A DNA stretch of 63,454 bases, counting the filler, from Pelomyxa schiedti (lineage: Eukaryota > Protista > Evosea): the NCBI GenBank assembly GCA_020536535.1. It is 9 parts of 9 records of this genome, joined end to end, with 100 filler letters (N's around TTAATTAATTAA, not from the genome) between each part and the next. Parts side by side here need not be neighbours in the genome. Positions count along the whole stretch, not along the records: positions 1 to 25,259 come from JAHLWZ010000576.1; 8 more parts are not named here. The stretch is one strand, 5' to 3'. The stretch's first letter is position 1. Every line of letters starts with the position of its first letter. Below, piece after piece: positions 4,995 through 25,259 of this stretch. The notes beneath the pieces are model-generated. The model saw only the letters and a program-made list of their open reading frames with translations. It was not told where the DNA came from and ran no database searches. A program made the translations under genes and the position numbers.

Positions 4995-7900
4995 ATGAGT
5001 TTGGTGATCCGGTACACGCACTGCTTCGTGGTTGGGCCGGTTGGCCTCGTCGGCGACTTTTTCACGCACCTCACTTGTAGCGGCACCTTTGTTGTGCGTC
5101 CCGAACAAAAAGGGACGCGTCCCGTACTCACGGTAACCAAATCCTCACCAACCTCAACAGCATCAGCAACAACAGCCGATCCCAGCGATGCGATTGATTG
5201 CGTGACAAAAACCGACCCCACTCTTTCCTCACCATCACCATCACCATCGCAACCAACAACACCCCAAAGGGATGAGATTCTGCACACCCTCAAGTATACA
5301 CTTGCCCACCAATGCTCCGAATTGAGGTTGTGGGACACCCCCAGAATTGAAAACGAATCCTCAGGTGGTGGCTACAATGTTAATTCTGATGAAGAGAAGC
5401 CGTCCAAATTATGTTATACGTTCTACCGGTGCTGTGGAGACAATTCTCTTACAAGTCAGTCACAACTTATTCACACTGTGTATGTGCATAACCTTTTCCT
5501 TTTTTTTTTTTCACTGACTTTTTGGTTCCAAGCTCTGGCAACAAGGTGCTCCTGATTCTGCACAGTTTTCAGGACAAGTATTTCCACATGGAAATACCCA
5601 CCATACTGAAGAATTTGCTGGCTCCAGATTTTCCCCGACCAGAGGCAACTCTGTTCCTGGTTGACTGCAGTGAGCTTAGCGATAAAGATGGAGGACTACT
5701 GATCACAGAAAGAGACATAGTGAAACAAACGCTGGTCTTAGTTCATCTGGCTTTTTCTGTGTGTAGTATCCTCTCTGCCTAGTTTTTTTTTTTTTTCCCA
5801 ACAACACTCACCTTGCTACCAGTTTTGTGCTCACAGTATGCTGAAGTGCACACAAAAACCTGGAAATTTGGACATTCTGCTATCGCTGTTCTCAGATCTC
5901 CCATTGCACCACAAACTAATAAGTCCATTGTATTTCCCAGACTTCCCAGGGGAACAATCATATGAGCTGGTTCCATTGCCTGAGCTACCCACCATCCTTC
6001 ACATCATGCGTGCCGATGTCACAACAGCGCACATGATCATGCAACTTGTTCACAATTACAGGTCGCAGTTCCCATTCTTCACAGTGTCAATGGCACTCAG
6101 GACTTGGCTGAGAGCAAAGAACGAGGCTGCTGTTGGTGTTGTGTGCCTTGCTAAGTCTATCACTGACTCTGAAAACATTGACCTTTCTGACTTGCATTTG
6201 TCACATGTTCCTGATTCATTGGGGAGATTGACGTGCAGGACACTCGACCTCTCCAGCAACAAAAACATCCATATGATTCCCAAGTGGTTGGCTTTAATGC
6301 CCAATGTCAGATTGGGAAGAGGTGACAGATGGCTGCTTAATGAGATGAAGGGAGATGAATTCACCAATTTCAAACCCAACAACACACACAAACTTGTGAT
6401 TTTTGGAGACACAGGTGTTGGAAAGACAACACTGTTGAGGTGTATGATGGAGGACAAGAAGAAACTGAGCACAAAGCATGTTCAACACACAGGAATTGCT
6501 GTGCATCACGATGTGAGGTTTAAATACAACAAGGGAACCAGCTGGACTGTCTGGGACCTTGGTATTGACTCTGATTCTTTTTTAGGAGCTGACACATGAA
6601 AACACAGGAGGGGAATCACTGTCACCGTTCCACCACTGGTTCCTCCTCAGCAGGTCTGTTTTCATCATCGTTTTTGATGTCTCCAAAGCACTGATGATGA
6701 AGGAACCACACATGGCAGTTTACCGATGGTTGAATGAATTCTCAGTTGCAAGGAGCCGTGGTTCCAAGGCAAGGGGGAGCATCTTCGTCGTTGGGACCCA
6801 CATGGAGGGAATTGATCCAAATGATCCCAAGCTGTGGGAGCTTATGAACTACATTTTCATTCAACAAGAGCACATATCCTTTGTCTTCTTAATGCAACTC
6901 AGCAATGGAAAGGGCTGGCGGTGCCACAACCACTCTTGCGTGACAGAAGAAGATTCCCGATGTGTATCTTCACTCCTGAGCTCTCTTCCATATGAAGTAT
7001 GTGATGACGGTATTCCCCAAGCTGTTCCTGAAAGTTGGATGATACTGAACACACAAATCATCCGAAATAGGGATGACAAAGTGAGAACCACTTCATTGAC
7101 GTGGACACAGTTTGTTCAGGTGGCAAAGAAGTGTGGTGTCTCAGTAAGAACACCACAACTGGTGGAAATCGAGCAGTGTGCTGACTTCTTGGCCGACATT
7201 GGGACCATTGTTCACTTCAGGTACCATGGCACCCTCAGTGAAATCTTGAAGGAAGACTTCATCATTGTGGAACCTCATTCCTTTTTGCGGTGCCTGTGTG
7301 AGACCATTTGTTCAAAGGGGGCACAAGTACTGCGAGAAAGTGCCCTTCCTGTGAAGCTAGCACTGAGAGCAGTTACCCGTGAGTTTAGTAACATTCAGGT
7401 TATCCTTGGACCTCCACCCTTTGAGAAGGAATCAGTGTCCTTTCTTCCGAGCAGTGTCATGACACCCCCCTCCTCCACTTTTCATAAATTCCAAAACTTC
7501 ACTGGTGACACCACAGTGAGTGGGAGAGTACTCAAGTTCTCCCTGTTTCCTCGGGCCTTGTTCCTCAAAGCCGTTTCTTTCATCTCAGGCTATCTTCACA
7601 ATGATGGCTGGCACACACATTTGTTTGGCAGCTGCGTTGTTTTTTCACATCATCCTATTAGTCAACCCGAAGAGTCATATTTATTCATGGCCTGCAAAGA
7701 AGAGAACACAATCTCGATTTGCATGAAACACTACCTTCCAATCCAGAAGCAAGTGGAAATCTGGGCAAAACTGAAACACACCCTCTGTCAAATCTGGCAG
7801 TCAGAATGTTATAGATATGAGGAAAGAGGTGCTTCTGAACTACTATCCACTGGGGTTTTTGTTGTTGAACTCTTCCCCTGTACATATTGCTTGTGGAAAG

Positions 7901-9054
7901 GCTTTTCTCCATCACAAAACTGGTTCAACTCTGCCAAACCATCTGCTCTGCCGCCAAACTTGTTTTATTTCACCAAAGACGACATCGTCCAGGCACTTAA
8001 AAATCAGCAACATCAGCTGACATGTGGTGGAAACGCACATCATGAAGTGGACCTTGTTGACGTGGCTCCTGACATGGTGGACCAGCATCTTCACCAACAG
8101 GCAGCATCCACATCACCAGTATTGGCAGCACCAATTGTACCAGCAGCAATTGTAGGAATGGTTGATGACATCAACAACCACAGCATCACGTTGGGGGAGC
8201 TTATGAAGTTACTCCTCCACAGGGGGAACGGGACAACATCTGTTCTTGACCAAGTTCTCCCAATCAGCTTGAAGATGAAGATTCTGCACGATGTGGCATG
8301 TAGCTTGATAGAGCTTCATGAACCAGCCCCTGATGACAACTATCGTTGTAGGAGCCATGGCAGAGTTTCCCCCGGTCTGAATTCCTTTTTCTTCCACATA
8401 GCGCAACTTACAGTAAAGAAACAGATAGCATCATTGTTCTGTCACTGGATGAATCAAGGGGTCCTTGGGCAGTGGTTTGGAAAGATTATTAACATACCCG
8501 GCGACTCACCCTTTTCAGATCACCAACACCAAACCATCGATCTTTCCTCCTTTTTGGCAGACTCCTTCAACAGCGGTTCCACTTTCACTGGGAGATGCGG
8601 ACTGCAGTTCTCCAGAGGTTCTCTGTGGCATGCCAGCTGGCACACATTCCGATGTTTGGAGCTTTGGTAAAACTTCAGTTCCACCCTAATCTCAGGTTGT
8701 TGACATTGACATTCAGGTATTACAGCAGGCATACTGTTGGACCCTCTGAAACAACCGTACTCACACATCACATCCAGATACCTCTTCACAGACTACAACA
8801 ATAACATCAATAAGAACAACCACCACCAGCCCTTGCACCTTTACCCCTGGGCCATTGGGCAGGACCTCCTCAGGGGTGTAATCACTCCATTCCCCCCACC
8901 ACCAACTCCACTTCTTGGGGGTTCATCATCAGAGACCAACAACAACATGTTCCAATTGGGATGTGAGATTGTAAGCATGTGCCTGGAACCCAAACCCAAC
9001 TCCAGGCCGTCCATGGGCACCATTCTCAAAGTGTGGAATTATTTTGTAACTTGA
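4995..9054 (+). CDS. Roco-family protein: degenerate N-terminal GTPase-like region, LRR, ROC, COR, C-terminal pseudokinase (multi-exon)
   Basis: LRRs IDLSDLHLSHVPDSL and TLDLSSNKNIHMIPKWL; ROC P-loop KLVIFGDTGVGKTT; spliced WDLGGE...SVFIIVFD; VVGTH; COR-like VPESW...FLADIGTIVHF; kinase C-lobe SPEVL...SDVWSFG...CLEPKPNSRPSM. Confidence 0.85.
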
Positions 9055-12833: not shown

Positions 12834-13174
12834 ATGTGTATGGGTGTGGCCGTATCGTATTATTGCATGAACGAAGAAACAGATTCGTGGCACAATTTGA
12901 TGGCCTGGAACGCGAAGATTCCGTAGTTGATGGCGATGTCTCTCAATGCTCACTCTGTTATCTATCCACTGTGTCGGGGTATCCACGCTATGTTGATTCC
13001 CTCGGCTGATTCGATGAACTGTTCCTCCTTTCAATTGTAGAGGTTCTGATTGCCAGCTTCCACGAAGCTGAATCACCTTCGAATCAATTTGCCAAGGACA
13101 CGACACGGGGAGTGCGTGTAGAGTAGCCAAACGTGATCCACAGCAGCAGTATCAGTAGTAGTAATAGTAATAGG

Positions 13175-14355
13175 ATGGTGGTGGTTGGTCGCGGTGTCGC
13201 AGTGTGGGTTGTGGTTGCGGTTGCGGCGGTTGTCGTGATGCAGGCCCGCGTGGGATCTTGCGGCTGGGGCAGTGTGTTTGTTGACATCGGGAAAAAAACG
13301 TCGGGCGAGCGGTGTTTTGTAGAGGACCTTCCCGCTGATACACTGGTCAGAGCAAGGTTCGTGTGTGGTCTATGCTCAAGCTTTTTTTATTTTTTATTTT
13401 TTTTTATTTTTCTTTTTCCTCGGTTGTGGTGACGGGTGAAAATGCAATAAAACTCCCAGAGAGTGTAACTATATGGGTGAATTGGAGTAATATATTGGGG
13501 ACGTTGACGAAAAAGAAAGGTACTCGCTGCATGACCACGTGCCGGATGAGATGATGAAACCACCTCCTGGTGGTCCTGGAATAGTAGGAGAGAGGCTCAG
13601 TGGGCAGCTGTTAGGTCTTATTTTTTAATTATGTTTGCATTGATTCCTCCGTTTTTACATTGCCCCAGATCAGGTAGCTTCTCGGTTTGGAATCCCTAGA
13701 GGGATTTCATCCAGACGCAATGTGACGGGCACTGGTGACATGGTAGCCGGCTTGCATATTGTAACTTCAGCTGTTTCTCCTTCGGGAAGGACTATACCGG
13801 CCGACCCTCTTTCCATCCTTGGGACGGTTGATGGAGAATTTTATTTCACAACAGCTGAAGAAGGCGAGCATGAAATATGTTTCCGAGTTGCACGGGAAAA
13901 GAGAAGAGCCCCAAAGGATGAAATTTTGGTAAGATTATTTCCGCATCACCAGTCCTGATTATTTGCAGAGATTGTTTGTTGAAATTCTGACTGGAGTTGA
14001 TGCTGTTAACTACATCGATGTCACATACACCGATGATATTTCCGGTGACTGCTAATTTTCTTTCCAAATGTATTTACACAAGGCAGCATTGCAAGAATAC
14101 GTGAATCGAGCCAATGATCTTGTTGCGGAAATCAAGGCGGAGGTGAGCCTTGATATTGACAGAGAAAAGTCCTTCCGAGCAACTGCCGACCGCGCTAGAA
14201 CTAAGCTATATCTTTGGGTTTCCCTACAGTTCGTTATTCTCGTTGCGTGCTGTGGCTGGTAACTGCCCATTTTCTTCCTATTCAGTAGCACTCACTATGC
14301 ACATAGGCAAATGATTCATCTGCGGAACTATTTCAAGTCAAGAAAGTTTTTCTAA
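13175..14355 (+). CDS. p24/emp24/gp25L (TMED) GOLD-domain cargo receptor (multi-exon)
   Basis: Signal peptide; ERCFVEDLPADTLV; GEFYFTTAEEGEHEICF; coiled coil REKSFRAT; TM LWVSLQFVILVACCGWQ; tail HLRNYFKSRKFF. Confidence 0.9.
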
Positions 14356-14643: not shown

Positions 14644-16036
14644 ATGATGAAAGCCAATAACAACAACGTTTGCGTTGAGGAGCAATGCACGCCCCCAATT
14701 TCGAAACGATCACGAGTGGCAAAATGTGTGTGCAACAAACATATCTCCAAATTATATGTTTGCATGCAAAAAAGCAAAAATAAAAAAATAAAATCACAAG
14801 CAATAAGTACTTATTGTATTTATTTTCTTAATTCAGCATTTTAATTTGTATTTTCCAGACCCCAACAATAATAATGACGAGGACTCTAATCAGTCTCTCG
14901 ACGCTGCAGCACTTGCACTCCAACTTCTAATCAGAAGTGCACAAGCTCGCCAGCAACAATTACAAGTACAATCACAAGAACCCACAATTGCGCCTTTGTT
15001 GGCCAGCCCATGCGGCTCTCCTCTGAGGCCAAACAACTCACAACCACATTCGCCGACTGGTGCTCAAACCCAGGCGAAATTGCCTGTTCAAGTCATTCAC
15101 CAAATCAACACGCCGAACAGCGGGCTCTCTTCCAAACCAGCACCTCAGCAGAACCAACAAAAGACCGCAAAGCGGAGGCTCACTTGGGCTGAGAAACTGT
15201 CCCTGTACTGCCACAGATGCGGCAGAGTGGAAACTCCTGAATGGAGAAAGGGCCCCGACGGTCCGGCAACGTATGTTCCTTCATACCAATAATAATTTGT
15301 ATAAGTTATTCTTTTACGGGATAAAGCTGACTCCTTTTTCTCCAGTTTGTGCAATGCTTGCGGGTTACAGTGGAGCACAAACTCCCTCATGCACAAACGC
15401 CGGGTGAGAAAATCAACTGGAACAAGGAGAAGAACTAAGAAAGCTGTTGAACCCCAGTCACAGCCCCCAGTTCCTACCACTGTTACGCTATCTCCGCCGC
15501 CACACCACCGCTCCATTTACAACATTCCGGAGTCATCCATCAACGAACTTCTATCTCTATCTCCGGTCCATTCTGCACCAACATCCACCTCCTCCAGCCC
15601 CGCATCAAGCCTACCACCATCCCCCGCACCCAGCCCCACATTTCATCCTGTTCTGATAAACAGTTCCGCTCCACACAAGTTCTTCCTGTCACCAACTCAC
15701 CGGTGTTCCCAGCAGGAATCCTCACCATCACCATCAAGGACATCACCCCTCATCCTCGCGGAATCTCCATCCATTCAATCTTTGCTGATTTCCACACCCG
15801 CAACACCATTATCCCCCAAGCCCCATATTGTATCCAATCCAAGTCCAAATACAAACACAAATACCAACCCAACATCAACCAATGACAGAAACCCACTGTA
15901 TCTACCTAGTAGCTGTCACCTTGAGGCCGACTTATTCAACCACCCACCATTCCGACATATACCCTCTCAATGTGTCTCTGTGGACAACAACAAGCATGAA
16001 AGCCTCATTGGACACTTGAGACGAATTATGTCATGA
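14644..16036 (+). CDS. GATA zinc-finger transcription factor (C-X2-C-X18-C-X2-C)
   Basis: CHRCGRVETPEWRKGPDGPAT|LCNACGLQW across one intron, then a basic region; start at 14644 or 14764. Confidence 0.9.
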
Positions 16037-16101
16037 ATGTAATTTGCAAAATAAACTATCTGGTGTTGATACTGTAAAAAATTTTGACTTCGAAATTGAG
16101 A

Positions 16102-18771
16102 TCAGTCCCTTGACCCCAACATAGTTCTTGCTGCGTTTGTGATTTTGTCCACGTTGTTGGCTGGTACTGTCCTATCAATCCACCTGTTTTTTTGTTGGTT
16201 TTTGACAGTTGAATGGATAGTAGTACCTATTGGCTCTGAGGGAGAGTGATTGCCAATCGGACTTGTGGTGTGAGTGCTCTTTTTCGAGATAGGCAAGAAC
16301 TAGGTAGTGGATATTATAATTTATATACAGAAAACCGGCGTTTTATTTTGTACTAAAATACAAGATAGATTATAATATAATAGATCTCTTATTTAGAATC
16401 GAAAGAGTGAGGGTGAACAAACCTAGGCATGTGGGCCAGGCATGCTTAATGATCGCGAGTGATGGAGGTGATTGTGGTGTGTTATCATCAAGAATGCGGA
16501 TGGACTGGCCTGCAGAAAATTAATTTTCTTTCTAGGAGGGTCTGAAGGATACCAATTACAGCAGCCAACTCGTCACTTAAAATCCATGAGCCATCAGTAA
16601 GTTGTAAGGAAGCCTTAACGGGGTTAATAAATCAAGATATGGCGTCAAATAGGTACCAATTTGTCTATTGGGTTCAGCATGGGCAATCGCGGAATAACAA
16701 CCTAGGTGCAGTTAAATTCGGAACTCTGCAGGAGTGGAAAAATACCACAGCTGGGAAGAGGGTCTTTTGAACTCGAGGGAGCGGCGAGTTTCCGAGGCCT
16801 CCTGCTTCTGTTTGAAGACATGCCGCCAACACACTTACATCCACTGTGCAAGTTTTGATTCTAAGGGTAAGTGCACTCTTGCCTGCTTGACTATCCCCAA
16901 CAACGACAACTAAGAATATTAGAGTGTTACAGTTATTAGAGCTTACCTTTATGAGAATAACAGTTAGAGCTGTATCCCTTAAGATATATGCCTAAATAGT
17001 GGTTAGACAACTCCATGAGAGAAAATGGACTCGCATTGAATAATTTCTTTTAAAAACCGGGGAACATTTTCCCCACTCGAAGCTGATACTTCATGGAATG
17101 GAATGCTGAAAGCAGTAGCTAATGCCTCTCCTTCAAGTGTGGACACCTGGAGCTTTTATTCATAACTAGCCCAAATAAAGGCAGATAACCTTCCGTTCCG
17201 AAACAAGATCTATTTTGGACCCAACTAGTACTATGATTGCATCTCGGAGATGCTCTTTCGCTTCTATAAGCCACTTGGAAGCATGATCAAAAGACACGCG
17301 ATCTGTACATGAATATACAACAATAACCGCTGAAGAACTTCTGTAGTAACTGGAGAAACTGTTACTTGAAGATAGGTATTTAGGTGCATACGTGCTGGCA
17401 AGTGAGCGATATTTTTCAATTCCAGCTTTTGATTGTTATTTTTCTTCTCATTTGAATTTGGGGAGGGATTTACCTGTATCCTGTAGCCATGTTAGTGCAA
17501 AGGGTAAACAGTACTATCATACCCAAAACTGAATTTTGAAAGACTGAAGCCCTTGCGTGTTTGGCTGAACGAGCATAAATTCGGCACCTACTGTGGAGGA
17601 GTATGCGGGTAGAACACATTCCCCTAGTGTCACTGATATCTTGACATAAAGTTTGAATCCAAAAAGAAAAAAATGGGGAAAATTACCTTTTCTGCTACTT
17701 CCAAATGTGCTGGTTCTTGTTCTGTTGGAGGTTCTGTCTCTCGTTCTTTCGGGGTGCGGTGTTCCTCTTTTGGAGTGAGTTGTTCAGCCTTAGGTGTGGG
17801 CTGATCAGCTTTTGGCGTGAGAGGTTGCTTAGGAATTTCATCTAACGGCAATTCAACCTGGTATGCACTTATTGGAAATATGGGAAGGGAACAACTTACA
17901 AGTTGGGAAGAAGGGGGCAGCAAGGGAGGTGCAGGACGAGCACCAGTTGACGCCCTAACTGAAGTGCTAGGACTTGTACATTAAGAAGTTAAGGAACACA
18001 AGATATTGGAAAGGTGTTGATATAGCGGTGTAAGTATGATATGGGTCTTCCTGTCTCATAGGAGTCTTCCGTCCCCCCAACAACTTCTGAGTCTCATCAT
18101 CAAAAAACTTTGCCAAGGCCGCCTAGTCATTTTGTAAAAAAAAAAAGGAAATAAACTGGATGAGACAAGCCATTCGCCACTTATGGGACAAACCCCTCCA
18201 CCCCCATCCCATCCCATCCCATCCATCCACCCTCTCGTAATTATTCCCAAGATATCGAGAGACACACGAGTAGATTCCCGTTTGACATTTCGATGTACTC
18301 TATTGCCTGGTGCTCGTCGGCCCTAGTGGCAGCACGGAACTCCTTGACAACCTCGCTCATCACAACCACTCCCCCTCCCCCTCCCCCTGCCCCTGCTCCT
18401 GTCCCTGCCCCTGCCCCTGCCCCGCTCTCCCTCGCACTAACAGCCCCACCACCACTAGCTGTTGTCGCTGTCGTGATGGTTGTGGTTGTGGTTGTGGTGG
18501 TGGTGGTGGCGGTTGGTGTAGGTTGGCTGCTGGCCGCGCTGCCCGCACCACCCCCACTCCCACTCCCTGTAGTCGTCGTCGCTGGTGTCGTTGTAGCCGC
18601 CGAGGTGGTCCCACTGTCTGTCGATGACGGTGATGAGGACGTCGTTGTTGTGGACGATGACGATGAGTCGGGCTGTTGTTGTGCTACCGACGAGCAGGCT
18701 GTTTCCGTTGATGCTGCACCGGATGGACCCGCCGAACCCGAAATCGAACCGTCGCCCTCCCCTGCGCTCAT
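16102..18771 (-). CDS. UBA-like domain + circularly permuted Rab-like GTPase + VWA5A/PARP4-like C-terminal helical domain (multi-exon)
   Basis: UBA-like VVKEFRAATRADEHQAIEYIEMSNGNLL|AALAKFF. GTPase motifs in the order STVGAEF, WDTAG, GSKID, EVSA, then KVVVVGDSQAGKS. C-terminal SLQLTDGSWILSDELAAVIG...WPTCL|VLAYLE...DWQSLSLRANRWI. Confidence 0.8.
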
Positions 18772-18916
18772 CTCTTATTCAATTGATTTTTTTTTTGAAA
18801 ACTTCTTCCTGTTTCCCTAAAGGGGCATGGGCATATGGACGAGGGAGGCGATAAAGTACAGTAAGGGTGTTGGGTGGGTGTGCTGTTTGTTTGGTGATGT
18901 TGGTGCGGGGGTATTC

Positions 18917-21900
18917 TCAGCACGAAGCAAATAGAGACTCGAGGGTGGTAACCACAGTCGAGAACGCTGTTGGTGTTAACATGTTAGGTGAAGCAGGGAA
19001 GATAGATAGGTAAAGAATATGGATGGTGGATTGGCATACGGGGTCGGTCTGTTGGTGCGGTGGCCCAGCACTCCGTGATGAGCGTCTTGCACTCTGCCGG
19101 CACTTTGTTTTCTGGAAGAGGAAGCCTCTGCGAGGGTATGTAAGAAGAGAGGAAAGAAAGGAGGAAGGTCGATGGAGGATACACACATTCCCGTTTATTA
19201 CAAACTCCGCGATTTCTGTGTTTGGTTTATGGTTAGTGTGCCGGTAAGGATTAGTTGTTGTTGGAAAGACTTACTCCACGCGGAGGGAAATTCATCTTCA
19301 CCGAAAGGAACTGTTGAAAAAAAAAATGAGGGTAAAAGTAAAGAGGAGAAGTCATTACCTTTCTCCACAAAAAGGGAATAACACAACACCGCAAAGCTGT
19401 AAGTGTCGGTGGAGGCATCGTAGTTAGCGTTTTGAAGAATTTCTCCAGAGNNNNNNNNNNNNNNNNNNNNNNNNNNNNNNNNNNNNNNNNNNNNNNNNNN
19501 NNNNNNNNNNNNNNNNNNNNNNNNNNNNNNNNNNNNNNNNNNNNNNNNNNGGGTAAAAGTAAAGAGGAGAAGTCATTACCTTTCTCCACAAAAAGGGAAT
19601 AACACAACACCGCAAAGCTGTAAGTGTCGGTGGAGGCATCGTAGTTAGCGTTTTGAAGAATTTCTCCAGAGTGTCAGTTACGTACTATATCATTGGGAAA
19701 CATACCAGGGCTCATGTAAGAAGGTGTTCTAGGATGTGTGATTAAGTGAAGTAAGAGCCACGTAGGAATTTACCCAATTGCTTTTGTCATTTGAAGAGCT
19801 TCTTTTGACGTTTGCACATCCCTAGTCGTTCCAAAATCGGTTATTTTTGCACAAACGGCACTAGCCGGATCAAGTGAACACAAAAGTACGTTATCCGTTT
19901 TGAGGTCTCTGTGTATTACACCGCTCTAGGGAAGGTAAGAAAAAGCGTAAGAAGACATTTGCAACCTGATGTAAATAGTTCATTCCTCTTGCAGTGTCCA
20001 AAGCAATTTTATACTTTTGTTTAATGGAGAGCTTGGTGTTCGCAATGGTAGTTGTGAGACTGCCTAATTCCATAAATTCCTACACAGCATCAGGCAAAAA
20101 GGAATAGAATCAGGAGGATTACAGTTAGAATTGCCAATCTCCGTTTTATATGTACAGCTCCTACAAAGCCCACAATCTAGTGATTGATAAGGAGAGATAA
20201 TAAAGTAGTAGTACTACCTGTGGACACCGGAAGGATTCCATTGTTTTGATCTACATTGGGTCAGATATATCACGTACTTAGTTTTAGCTACAAACCTCAT
20301 TAAGGAAGTCCTTGTAGATTTGAGCAGAGCCCAGCTCTTGGTTTTTTAGGATCTACACATATATCGATATATTTTCAGTTTGTACCCAACTGTCAAAAAA
20401 AGGTACCTTTACGGCTACTTGTTGACCTCTCCATTCTCCTCTGTAAACGAAACCAAACGAGCCTGTGGAAGTTAATACAAAAGAAAGAAAGTCAAGTCCT
20501 AAATCACCTTCTCCAATCGGCGGTGGATGTAAAACAATTTCATCAGGATCAAGTTTAGTGGAAAGCTTATGTTTGAGTGAGGAATTGAGAAACATGATGG
20601 AAATTTCTTACCTTAGATTCGATTTTAATGGGGAGGGAAATGTGTTGTAAGGGTCTTTCCGCATATACATGACCTAGGTTTTATTTAGAGGGAAAAAATG
20701 AGAAGGTAATTACTGTCTACCTACAGAAGCTGCTAGTATTAAGCTGGAGTCAAGAGCTGTTGTACACAAAATTGAAGCTCCAATTTTTACTCTGGTTTCA
20801 CCTGACTACTCATTTTAGTTGTGAATAGTCAAGAAGAATACCAACTGGTGGTATAATGCCTGCGGCCGGCTCAAAGAGAGTGTTGATTTTGTATGTGGCA
20901 GGCGGGAACCATTTGAAGGAAATGTACTTTTTCGAAGTATTCGTGAGGATAACAGTTTCTTCAAGGTGTTGATCAACAGATGCACGGTGCCCATTCAGCC
21001 CCAAAGAAATGCTAGTTACCGACACCTTACAGATTTGTTAGAAAGTTGGAGAGTTCTGAGGAAGAAACTTGGAGCAAAAAGTCTGTAACGGATACAGCCC
21101 TAGAAGGAGATGAGAACTTTCACTTACTGCTATGCATACGTAGAGTGGGATTCATCGAACACCTCCTTCGAGGGATCATCTTCCTGCATTGTAGTCCACA
21201 AGCTACTCATTGCCACTTCCTTTTCAGGATTCCTGTGGGACATTAAAAGGCAAATGGTCGTGTGAAAGTGCACACATTTTCTTTCTTCTGAGAACAGCGA
21301 AAACAACAATACAGGCCAGGCCTGCAGTAAACACGAACGCTCCTGCAACGCCCAGTCCAATGGCCAGGCCTTTCCCTTTCTGTTTCACACAACGAAGTCC
21401 ATAGGCAGAACTATGCTGGGATGCTACAGTGACTATCACTTCATCCCAAGGTTGAGAATTTGATGGCAGCTGGCACTTAAGTCCACTGTTGGGAAGAACG
21501 AATTTTAAATCTGTGCAAGTCCGATGCCCAACTGATACTGAGATCTTATTGATAACAGATCCAAAGTTTGCGCCTATTCTTTGATAAGAACAGCCATTTT
21601 AATAATAAGAGAACCAGAAATGTTCAGTTCCCCCGAACAAGACCCAGCATTAGCGAAATCAATTATTGGTGCTGCGGTAAGGATTGATGGAAGTTCAATA
21701 AGGACTTGAATTTACATAGTACCTTGGTAGGAAAACACTATAGCTGACGCCGTCTGTGAGACTGGAGAGTCGTATGGAACGGTAACCTATCAGCCAATTA
21801 ACAGAAAACGGTTTCAGAGTAGACTCACCCTAACAGTTTTATTTGTTCCCACACCAGCCGGAGGAAGACATGAAATTTCAGATCCAGGCGTTGTGACCTG

Positions 21901-24900
21901 GGCGTCCTCACATTTCTCTCCTCCAATAGTTACATGCACCTAAACACATTTGATTAGGCTAATGACCGGTACTGGGTTTTCATTATCCCACCTGTGTGCT
22001 CAGGGGTCCGAAGTTCAAACCAGTGATTTTAGTATATTCATCTCCTGCTGTGCCGGTTGCGGTAGCAGAGAAGATAGAAGGCCCTGGAAAATGTTGGTGC
22101 TTACATACAAAGAAGTGAGGAGTACCCTGATAGTCAAAGAGTATGGAATTAGACTTCTGTCCCTTGACAGTGATAGCCAGCGTGTGGTGGATACCAGTTC
22201 CTGCTGGAATATGCACTAAGATGGCAGTTTGATTTATCAATGTGCCAGAGAAGAAAATATCGTCACTATCAATGAAAACATAAATACTGTAGATAACTCC
22301 TCCTGGTCCAAAATTTATGCCCTTGTAATATCTGTTAGTTATTTTTCTTCCCCCTTACCACTCACTTTTAATATAATGTGTTCACCAAGTGTTTGTGTAG
22401 CTGGAAAAGTTTCAATAACGGGTTCTGATAAACGAAGTTACAAAAAGCAATGAGAAACAAACTGCACTACTTTCATAGCAGTAATCAGTCATGTATGCAG
22501 ACTGAGCAGAACCTTTCGGTACGTAAACTTGAAGAGCATTCCCGCAACCAACACCGGGAGGGGGATAACACTGTGATAACAAATTAAGGAATAAACCACA
22601 AGGGTGAAACAAATCTTCCGAACCTCTATCTCTGTGTGGGGAAACACAACAGAAGCATGAATACACTCAACACCCCATATAGTTGCACTCACAACAGTTT
22701 CTAATGGTCCAAAATTCATACCAGTGATAATCGTCCTGTCATAAATTGTGACTATTTTTGCAACGAAAAAATGTCCTACTTAGAGTCCCCAGTCGTATTT
22801 GCAGGAGTTGCTTGAAGGACTACAGGACCTGAGAATATAAGACGACTTGTCGAAGAGTATGAGATATACTGTCGTAAGAAAAAGTGCCAGGTGCACTTTG
22901 CTGTCCACTTCCCACATTTGGTACGGTAATTATGACTGTATGATCTGTACCAGTCCCTTCCGGAGGAAAGCAGGAAACCATAGTGTGGGCTGTTTCAACT
23001 CTAGCATCTTTGCAGATAGCTTCTCCAACAAAAACTCCAATACTGCTATTGAGGGGGCCAAACCCTGTTCCATATATCTTGGTTCGATTTTGGCCATTTG
23101 TTGGGGCCTTTGTTGTGTAGCTGATTGTTGGAGCTGAAAATAGGAAAGAAATGTTGTAAGTACCCCGTCAGAGGAGATGAAAAATACGATCATAGGAAAA
23201 GATCGCTGCAGTTGCTGTCTGAGCTGTGTCAGAATCTGGAATGTAAACAGTAACATTCAAGCCTGCTCCANNNNNNNNNNNNNNNNNNNNNNNNNNNNNN
23301 NNNNNNNNNNNNNNNNNNNNNNNNNNNNNNNNNNNNNNNNNNNNNNNNNNNNNNNNNNNNNNNNNNNNNNAATGTTGTAAGTACCCCGTCAGAGGAGATG
23401 AAAAATACGATCATAGGAAAAGATCGCTGCAGTTGCTGTCTGAGCTGTGTCAGAATCTGGAATGTAAACAGTAACATTCAAGCCTGCTCCAGCTCCTACA
23501 GGAGGAGAGCAACCAATCTGTGTGTGGGCAACTTTCACACGTGCAGAGCTGCACACATCCCCATTTATTTTTACTCCTACCTGGTAAACGCATGAACAGA
23601 ACTGAAAAAAAAAGAGTACAATACGTTAGTTCCAAGTGGTCCAAAATTGGAGCCATAGATGATAGCCTCTTGTCTTCCGTCAGTCCCTGAACCACCTGCA
23701 GAGGACAAGGTGGGGACTGCCAAAGTTAAGTTGGACAAGAAAATTTGACCCACAGTACCATTATAGGAGAAGATCGACTTAGTACTGGAAAGAGGGAAAC
23801 TGTATCCTGTAGAAGTTGCTGGGATGGAGACTTGAACAGGCAATAATCCTCCAGCCCCTGGAGGCGGGATACATGTTATTTCCACATGTGCTCGGCTCAC
23901 AGAGGCATTAGCGCAGATTTTTCCATCAATTGTAACAGCAACAGACGAATTCAATGGTCCAAAGTTGCTTCCAGTAAGAATTACAGGTATGCCTCCTTTT
24001 GTGTCGCAGGAAGTTGTACTATCCAGCTTCGGAGCTATCAGAGTTAGCATCATTTATTTGATTGAAATGCACACCATTGTATGAGAATACATTGGAGGAG
24101 GCATAGTGGTCAAGGCCAGGAACCAATACCTCAGTTTGGGTTTGTTAAGTGCCACAAGTTTATTGATGGTTACCTCCACTTTCATTGAAGATCCACAGCC
24201 CGGTGGAGGGGAACAGGCAATTTGCTTATGTGCTACTTGTACAAAAGCGTTTGGACAATTGACGGAGTTTATACGAACGGTCACGTTTGCCCCAATGGGA
24301 CCGAAATTCGCTCCACTTATAACTGTCTTAGATGGGGCATCAGTATCGATTGGACTTGCAGAAGTTATTTCAGGAGCTGCGGAATTTCAACCAATTTGGA
24401 GGAAAAAGACATCACACCTTTGTAAGAAAAAACAGAGTCTGTATGCTGGGCATGATTTGGATCTGAAGGAATCCATAGACGGAGGGGGAGTACACCATAT
24501 CCAGGTGGTGGGTAGCAAGAAACCTTGGTATGATTCTTCGACACCCAAGGTTTGCGGCAAGGTTGCCCTCCAATTGTGATATTGAACGTTGCATCCAGAG
24601 ATGATCCTAGGTTAAATCCTTCGATTGTAAGCGACTCATTTCCATCCGTGTTGGCACGTGAGACAGAGGAAATTGAAGGTGCTACTCATATTGAGATTGT
24701 GCAAAGAATGTGAAAAGCAGACCTGTGTAGTCGAATACAGAAGAATTACAGCGCTGGGAGCCAAACTTACCCTCAGCAGGTACCCAAACACCCACATCAA
24801 CATCAGCTCCAACACCAGGAGGCGCAATGCATTTAATCTGGAAATGGTCTACCCAGATAGTGGCATTCAAGCATGGTTTGCCACCAATTCGTACAGAGAC

Positions 24901-25259
24901 ACCTCCGGCAGCATCCAAGGTGCCAAAATTAGTGCCATATATCATTACACTGGTACTTCCTGCTGTATCAGCAGAGCTGGCGAAAGATACAGTTGGAACT
25001 GCAGTGGGAATAGTGTAAAAAAAAAAAAAAAAAGTGATCCTGTACAATTGTAAGAAAAAGCACTAGCCGAGTACTGCAATGAAGGACGCCCAAATCTGGC
25101 AACAAAGACAGTAACTGTCAACCCTTCAAGTTTCAAACTGAGAAAGCGGCACCATGGGGAAACGGGGGAAGGACACACCAGCACCAGTAACATTGGCTGG
25201 TGGGTAACACTGAATCTCATGATGCGGAACAGAAACGGCAGCCTCAGTGCATTCACTTC
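18917..25259 (-). CDS. Transmembrane receptor kinase with tandem IPT/TIG ectodomain and TKL kinase (5'-truncated, many exons)
   Basis: At least 8 GxNFG(P/T/S)...C...HxxIxCxxPPG repeats; TM GLAIGLGVAGAFVFTAGLACIVVFAVL-RRKK (~21290-21370); LSTKLDPDEI, GEGSFGFVYRG, VAVK, HRDLKTDN, DFG, ECW...RP. Confidence 0.9.
19330..19671. other. Scaffold gap (100 N, 19451-19550) with 121-bp duplicated flanks
   Basis: 19330-19450 equals 19551-19671. Confidence 0.95.
23150..23491. other. Scaffold gap (100 N, 23271-23370) with 121-bp duplicated flanks
   Basis: 23150-23270 equals 23371-23491. Confidence 0.95.

Follow-up and report, generated by a model that had tools for sequence, protein, structure and literature searches.

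The window analysed here is a stretch of 63,454 nucleotides of Pelomyxa schiedti DNA made of nine joined parts, of which positions 1 to 25,259 come from JAHLWZ010000576.1. On its minus strand, between positions 18771 and 16102, lies the gene of the NCBI protein KAH3760935.1 (608 aa), annotated merely as "rab protein 6". Directly upstream lies a large gene (18900-25250, minus strand) whose product combines TIG/IPT repeats with a transmembrane stretch and a kinase domain; the 3' end of this gene is supported by RNA. The same region contains a Roco-like gene (5838-8670, plus strand) that matches Roc and COR-A weakly and ends in a kinase-like region, a gene of the p24/GOLD family (13100-14300, plus strand) and a GATA zinc-finger transcript (14846-16036, plus strand), which is convergent with the gene under study and meets the 3' end of its long isoform at 16065-16072. 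Three gaps of 100 N (1936-2035, 19451-19550 and 23271-23370) are flanked by repeats of the same sequence and are probably scaffolding artefacts; they do not affect the gene described here.

The first exon (18268-18771), predicted by the NCBI model and devoid of RNA coverage, encodes an S/T/G/A low-complexity region and the first part of a UBA-like domain (Pfam UBA_4, E-value 9.7e-5 on the exon). The complete UBA_4 domain (aa 140-179, 18090-18354) is interrupted by a 145-nt intron and is detected in KAH3760935.1 with an E-value of 1.5e-8 (34.8 bits); that it is spliced to the exons of the GTPase is a prediction. A linker rich in P, E and K follows (17687-18122; exons 18122-17998, 17954-17900 and 17857-17687), which contains no P-loop and is covered by RNA for 17791-17687 only. 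The next exon (17523-17639), present in RNA and aligned to Rab1 and Rab2 from switch I on, encodes switch I with the G2 motif (STVGAEF, 17597-17577), beta2 and beta3. A microexon of 7 nt (17474-17480), whose letters are found between the two sides of the joint in the RNA contig, falls within G3 (WDTAG). The exons 17425-17392, 17349-17190 and 17146-17035 (17035-17425 as a whole), supported by RNA and by Pfam Ras exon by exon (E-values of 3e-13 and 4.6e-4), encode switch II, with Ile at the position of Gln61, then G4 (SKID, 17222-17208), G5 (17092-17078) and alpha5. The exon 16947-16991, recovered in the RNA contigs X3 and X4, comprises the end of alpha5, an 11-residue linker and the start of beta1. 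The relocated beta1, the P-loop GDSQAGKS (16898-16875) and alpha1 are found at 16851-16909, followed by a C-terminal tail (16102-16850, RNA joints) of 151 aa in the long isoform, with a stop at 16372 or 16104 depending on alternative splicing. The UBA-like domain, the tail and the substitution of Gln61 add to the initial annotation of this DNA.

In that annotation the minus strand had been spliced by hand from 17639 to 16909 onward, and the unbroken frame so obtained has the order G2, G3, G4, G5, alpha5, linker, beta1, P-loop, alpha1. The introns removed in this way measure 37-48 nt; five of them are GT-AG and one is GC-AG. GC-AG introns represent 1.59% of the introns of P. schiedti (PMC8887013). 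All seven exon boundaries proved real, since they agree with the intron ends and with the RNA contig X3#16 (994 nt), which extends over 17791-16375 as a single spliced molecule without any of the six introns and has four extra letters, corresponding to the microexon, between 17427 and 17522. In the contig X4, the two junctions that lead from alpha5 to the P-loop are seen again, together with a longer 3' isoform. X3 and X4 represent one sample, and all four runs (two of RNA, two of DNA) come from one study and were used as assembled contigs rather than raw reads. The P-loop exon extends from 16909 to 16746 in continuous RNA and the frame then passes through more exons to either stop, remaining open across 16 exons; the three coding differences between runs, a very small sample, are all synonymous. 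A transcript end or a frame change before 16909, envisaged initially, is thus contradicted by RNA running through the P-loop exon. The linker of KAH3760935.1 is 5 aa shorter because of a different donor, whereas X3 and X4 are both spliced from the donor at 16946 (16947-16965 in the window). The first letters of the RNA contig at 17791 match what we take to be the terminal letters of the template-switch oligo used in Smart-seq2, and this start is most likely that of a truncated cDNA; the exons further upstream, including those of the UBA-like domain, are therefore joined by prediction. One spliced mRNA encodes the segment from switch I and beta2 to alpha5, the 11-residue linker and then beta1, P-loop and alpha1, every element being present once.

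The genome was obtained from whole-genome-amplified cells (PMC8887013) and the 5' exons have no RNA coverage, so that an artefact of assembly, amplification or splice modelling, or a missed upstream exon carrying the P-loop, had to be considered. The Smart-seq2 transcriptomes were made separately (PMC8887013) and show the junctions, the DNA contigs X1 and X2 from two runs are each unbroken over 15900-18356, with no trace of the chimeric join that had been feared near 17000, and as far as the next gene no P-loop exists in any of the six frames. We consider such an artefact extremely improbable.

The profiles used here derive from 49 natural Rab-like proteins. That of the Rab N-terminal part (beta1, P-loop and alpha1) has a single match, located after alpha5 (25.5 bits, E-value of 3.5e-10 for one sequence), and no other match in the protein or in the six frames of 15900-19400. 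The placement of the P-loop after G5, the lack of a GxxxxGK motif in the upstream P/E/K-rich exons and the single occurrence of each G element, all claimed initially, are thereby borne out. The profile coverage is complementary: the body corresponds to positions 6-140 of the C-part and the relocated piece to positions 3-23 of the N-part, and positions 27-160 of Pfam Ras align to aa 297-430. The protein is recognised as a single domain by a re-permuted Rab profile, with 144 bits versus 120 for the canonical order. There is no second Rab body downstream: when compared with the Rab body, the tail reaches -4 bits, a score in the range of shuffled sequences; these 151 aa have no match in Pfam, NCBIfam or Atlas. 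A hidden upstream P-loop at KISVTLGE was rejected (-7 on the beta1 matrix versus 17 for the true strand), as was a second, degenerate Rab reached from alpha1 by splicing out an intron at 16838, because RNA is continuous over 16909-16746. The gene is real and expressed, and it very probably represents a small-GTPase fold circularly permuted in a new way.

Residues 284-462 of KAH3760935.1 (the NCBI isoform with the linker shorter by 5 aa) were submitted to AlphaFold together with aligned natural Rabs, 35 bodies and 25 heads entered in separate rows, nothing pairing both segments; the rows were chosen for correct register ahead of any fold result. The five models all have a pLDDT of 73-74, with 80-85 for the C-terminal beta1 and alpha1 and 30-50 for residues 284-328 (switch I, beta2 and beta3); the single-sequence fold gives 34. 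The C-terminal beta1 is modelled in its usual position in the sheet, with the P-loop completing the nucleotide site in cis, a result to be read in the light of the prior of AlphaFold for the Rab fold, which may dock any available beta1 and P-loop. The model matches Rab6, Rab8 and Rab3 with Z-scores of 15-16 over model residues ~17-152. Model residues ~46-179 align in sequence order, across the junction of alpha5 and P-loop, with YqeH, YjeQ, RsgA and YlqF (Z 10.1-11.3, rmsd 2.5-3.0), notably YqeH 3h2y (Z 11.3, rmsd 3.0, 120 aa), YjeQ 2yv5 (Z 10.5, rmsd 2.5, 112 aa) and YlqF 1puj (Z 10.1, rmsd 3.0, 126 aa). From this collinear match to solved permuted GTPases, the relocated strand and P-loop of the model would sit as they do in those structures.

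The relocated segment might instead act in trans, in a domain-swapped dimer or by complementing another headless Rab. Split small GTPases do reassemble from separate chains, and a separate beta1 fragment of Cdc42, Rac1, RhoA or KRas can restore a GTP-binding domain with the rest of the protein, although these engineered proteins are cut at a site different from that of the Pelomyxa gene (10.1101/2024.01.03.574079). The predicted model closes in cis even with the shorter linker, and we judge an action in trans very unlikely.

The residues kept in the domain are the P-loop G-x4-GKS, the Thr of G2, the DTAG of G3, the Lys and Asp of G4 and the Ser-Ala of G5, and all P-loop residues invariant across the 49 natural Rabs are retained. 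Other positions are changed: Gln61 (Gln in 46 of 49) is Ile, the position of Gly13 is Gln, NKxD of G4 is SKxD, SAK of G5 is SAS (Lys in 44 of 49), an Asp found in 47 of 49 is Ser, and the aromatic residue of position 28 (Phe in 42 of 49) is absent on either side of the cut. By established Ras and Rab biochemistry, such substitutions lower hydrolysis and nucleotide affinity. Given the changes at Gln61 and Gly13 and the loss of the Phe28 aromatic, the domain would hydrolyse weakly and bind loosely. No prenylation cysteine or motif is found, the isoforms ending in ...RSIIL or ...LGSRD. The replacement of near-invariant residues (Gln61, Phe28, the Lys of G5 and the Asp now Ser) would also suit a permuted fold that has become a nucleotide-free pseudo-GTPase, where the packing of beta1 and alpha1 merely stabilises a scaffold; the GKS of the P-loop, the Thr of G2, the Asp and Gly of G3, the Lys and Asp of G4 and the Ser of G5 would be needless in a pure scaffold, and we hold this reading to be unlikely.

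The genome of P. schiedti has at least 172 Ras-family matches. The order G2-G3-G4-G5-G1 is absent from the other Ras-family loci fetched (a minority of the family, screened by motif pattern, L042 excepted), and neither the P-loop plus tail exon nor the tail has a second copy in the genome. Among 1.84 billion representative proteins, the P-loop plus tail exon, used alone as query so that permuted relatives with another tail would escape, has exactly one match, KAH3760935.1 itself, which forms a one-member cluster. No outside homologue was found by searches that were insensitive, recovering at most KAH3760935.1 and not even ordinary Rabs, and a metagenome scan gave two canonical Rabs and no permuted homologue. 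The gene is provisionally a singleton. In a tree of viral and MAG Rabs and 14 Pelomyxa paralogues, without Ras or Rho outgroup, it has a long branch (2.1) and is placed with no parent Rab or subfamily. The P-loop piece scores 55-57 against Rab1-like heads and 53 against Ras heads, and two introns coincide with positions in other Rabs, which is about chance level. The locus L040 (G000 C720:64201), considered as parent because of an identical 7-nt microexon (GATACAG) in G3, was rejected since it belongs to the Rho family; the microexon is probably convergent.

Several loci of this genome display neighbouring G domains. At L032 (G000 C354), a Ras-type domain is closely followed by a Rab-type domain, with several further Ras-family matches on the contig. 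At L025/L058 (G000 C562) and L075 (C1001), a Rab domain is followed ~800 nt on by a second, Roc-like P-loop, and these probable Rab-Roco fusions have one intron position in common with the permuted gene.

With such tandem or fused domains in the genome, a long branch and a singleton gene, a decaying tandem Rab could be imagined, in which a headless first domain is followed by the leftover, unpacked head of a second. The losses are exactly complementary, the P-loop is intact despite a tail within the range of shuffles, the frame is open over 16 exons, the variants are synonymous and the predicted model packs; we find this history improbable. The motif residues retained in the P-loop and in G2 to G5, while the rest of a putative second copy is unrecognisable, point to selection. 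As a whole, the data are best explained by a Rab-type G domain that is truly circularly permuted, an explanation that we estimate to be likely. The origin of this domain would lie in two Rab genes, fused or produced by tandem duplication, with subsequent reciprocal loss of the head of the first copy and of the body of the second. We infer this from the exact complementarity, from the last residues of the linker (Y-x-x-K, as at the N-terminus of Rabs, right before beta1) and from the expansion of this family, in which fused G domains occur.

The domain would fold in cis and bind GTP loosely with fast exchange (loss of the Phe28 aromatic, SKxD, SAS), and its intrinsic hydrolysis would be poor (Gln61 to Ile, Gly13 to Gln), hence it would probably be mostly GTP-bound. 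Switch I, having no covalent tie to alpha1, would hang from the upstream linker. The protein would probably be a non-prenylated, soluble adaptor tying the ubiquitin-related partners of its UBA-like domain to Rab-type effectors. We lean slightly towards a third topology for the GTPase fold in nature and a first permuted Rab that binds nucleotide, with switch I freed from alpha1, and in which the UBA-linker and the tail could pull on two new ends to control the switch. If true, the chain of this third permutation is cut just before the effector loop, where it connects the Mg/phosphate site to switch I, and the gene is a natural test of whether the continuity of alpha1 and switch I is needed for binding and switching. 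It would also illustrate cleanly how duplication and reciprocal loss produce a permutation, and would give a natural template to those who engineer small GTPases in permuted or split form. Annotation pipelines hide such proteins, this one being listed as a standard Rab and given a splice in the linker that is contradicted by RNA.

The protein would work like a Rab-derived G domain. Its body aligns with Rabs (Rab1/2/6/8 groups; PF00071) from switch I to alpha5 (PDB E-value ~1e-26), G1 to G5 are all located, with substitutions in G3, G4 and G5, and VGAEF, KIQFW, KYRSLA, YYRSS and VVYSCT are in register with Rab1 and Rab2 as degenerate versions of the RabF1-F5 consensus. Unlike Rabs, it has beta1, P-loop and alpha1 at the C-terminal side instead of the canonical order G1-G2-G3-G4-G5, no prenylation cysteine, Ile for Gln61, a predicted UBA-like domain and an orphan tail.

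No paper on the order G2-G3-G4-G5-G1 or on a permuted Rab was found by a full-text search, with most subscription journals outside its coverage, in agreement with the initial statement that no description was known. Permuted GTPases of the YRG or YlqF/YawG type (RsgA, YqeH, RbgA, Nog2, Lsg1) share the connection of alpha5 to beta1, and the segment G4-G5-G1 is collinear by profile and model: the RsgA profile spans the junction (345-458) with 23.9 bits, below its cut-off of 30, and that of YqeH (349-456) with 14 bits, below 297. YRG GTPases also carry a hydrophobic residue at the catalytic Gln position. They start at G4, as had been noted (G4-G5-G1-G2-G3), and are ancient ribosome-assembly factors, whereas G2 and G3 are upstream in the Pelomyxa protein and the identity is 12-23%. 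The cpRAS proteins are likewise natural eukaryotic permutants of the Ras superfamily, have alpha5 joined to beta1 within a larger protein and occur in Amoebozoa. Their order, first given to us as G4-G5-G1-G2-G3, is in fact G3-G4-G5-G1-G2, the chain being opened from beta2 to beta3 (Elias and Novotny 2008, PMC2430557), and the Pelomyxa order differs from both. They belong to the RAS family, with TIE in G2 and VWA or alpha-2-macroglobulin-like (COG2373) partners (PMC2430557). The Pelomyxa protein opens between alpha1 and switch I, its Rab-like body being accompanied by a UBA-like partner; nothing resembling G2 follows alpha1, its G2 is of Rab type (TVGAEF, no TIE), and VWA and COG2373 are absent, Pfam giving UBA-like and G-domain families only. 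As related in PMC2430557, a systematic survey had argued for a single viable permutation of the GTPase fold, and cpRAS was published as the counter-example. RNA, profiles and the structure model support the cut proposed initially, independent of the known permuted GTPases, and our best reading of G2-G3-G4-G5-G1 is a third, independent GTPase permutation that arose through duplication or fusion and reciprocal loss.
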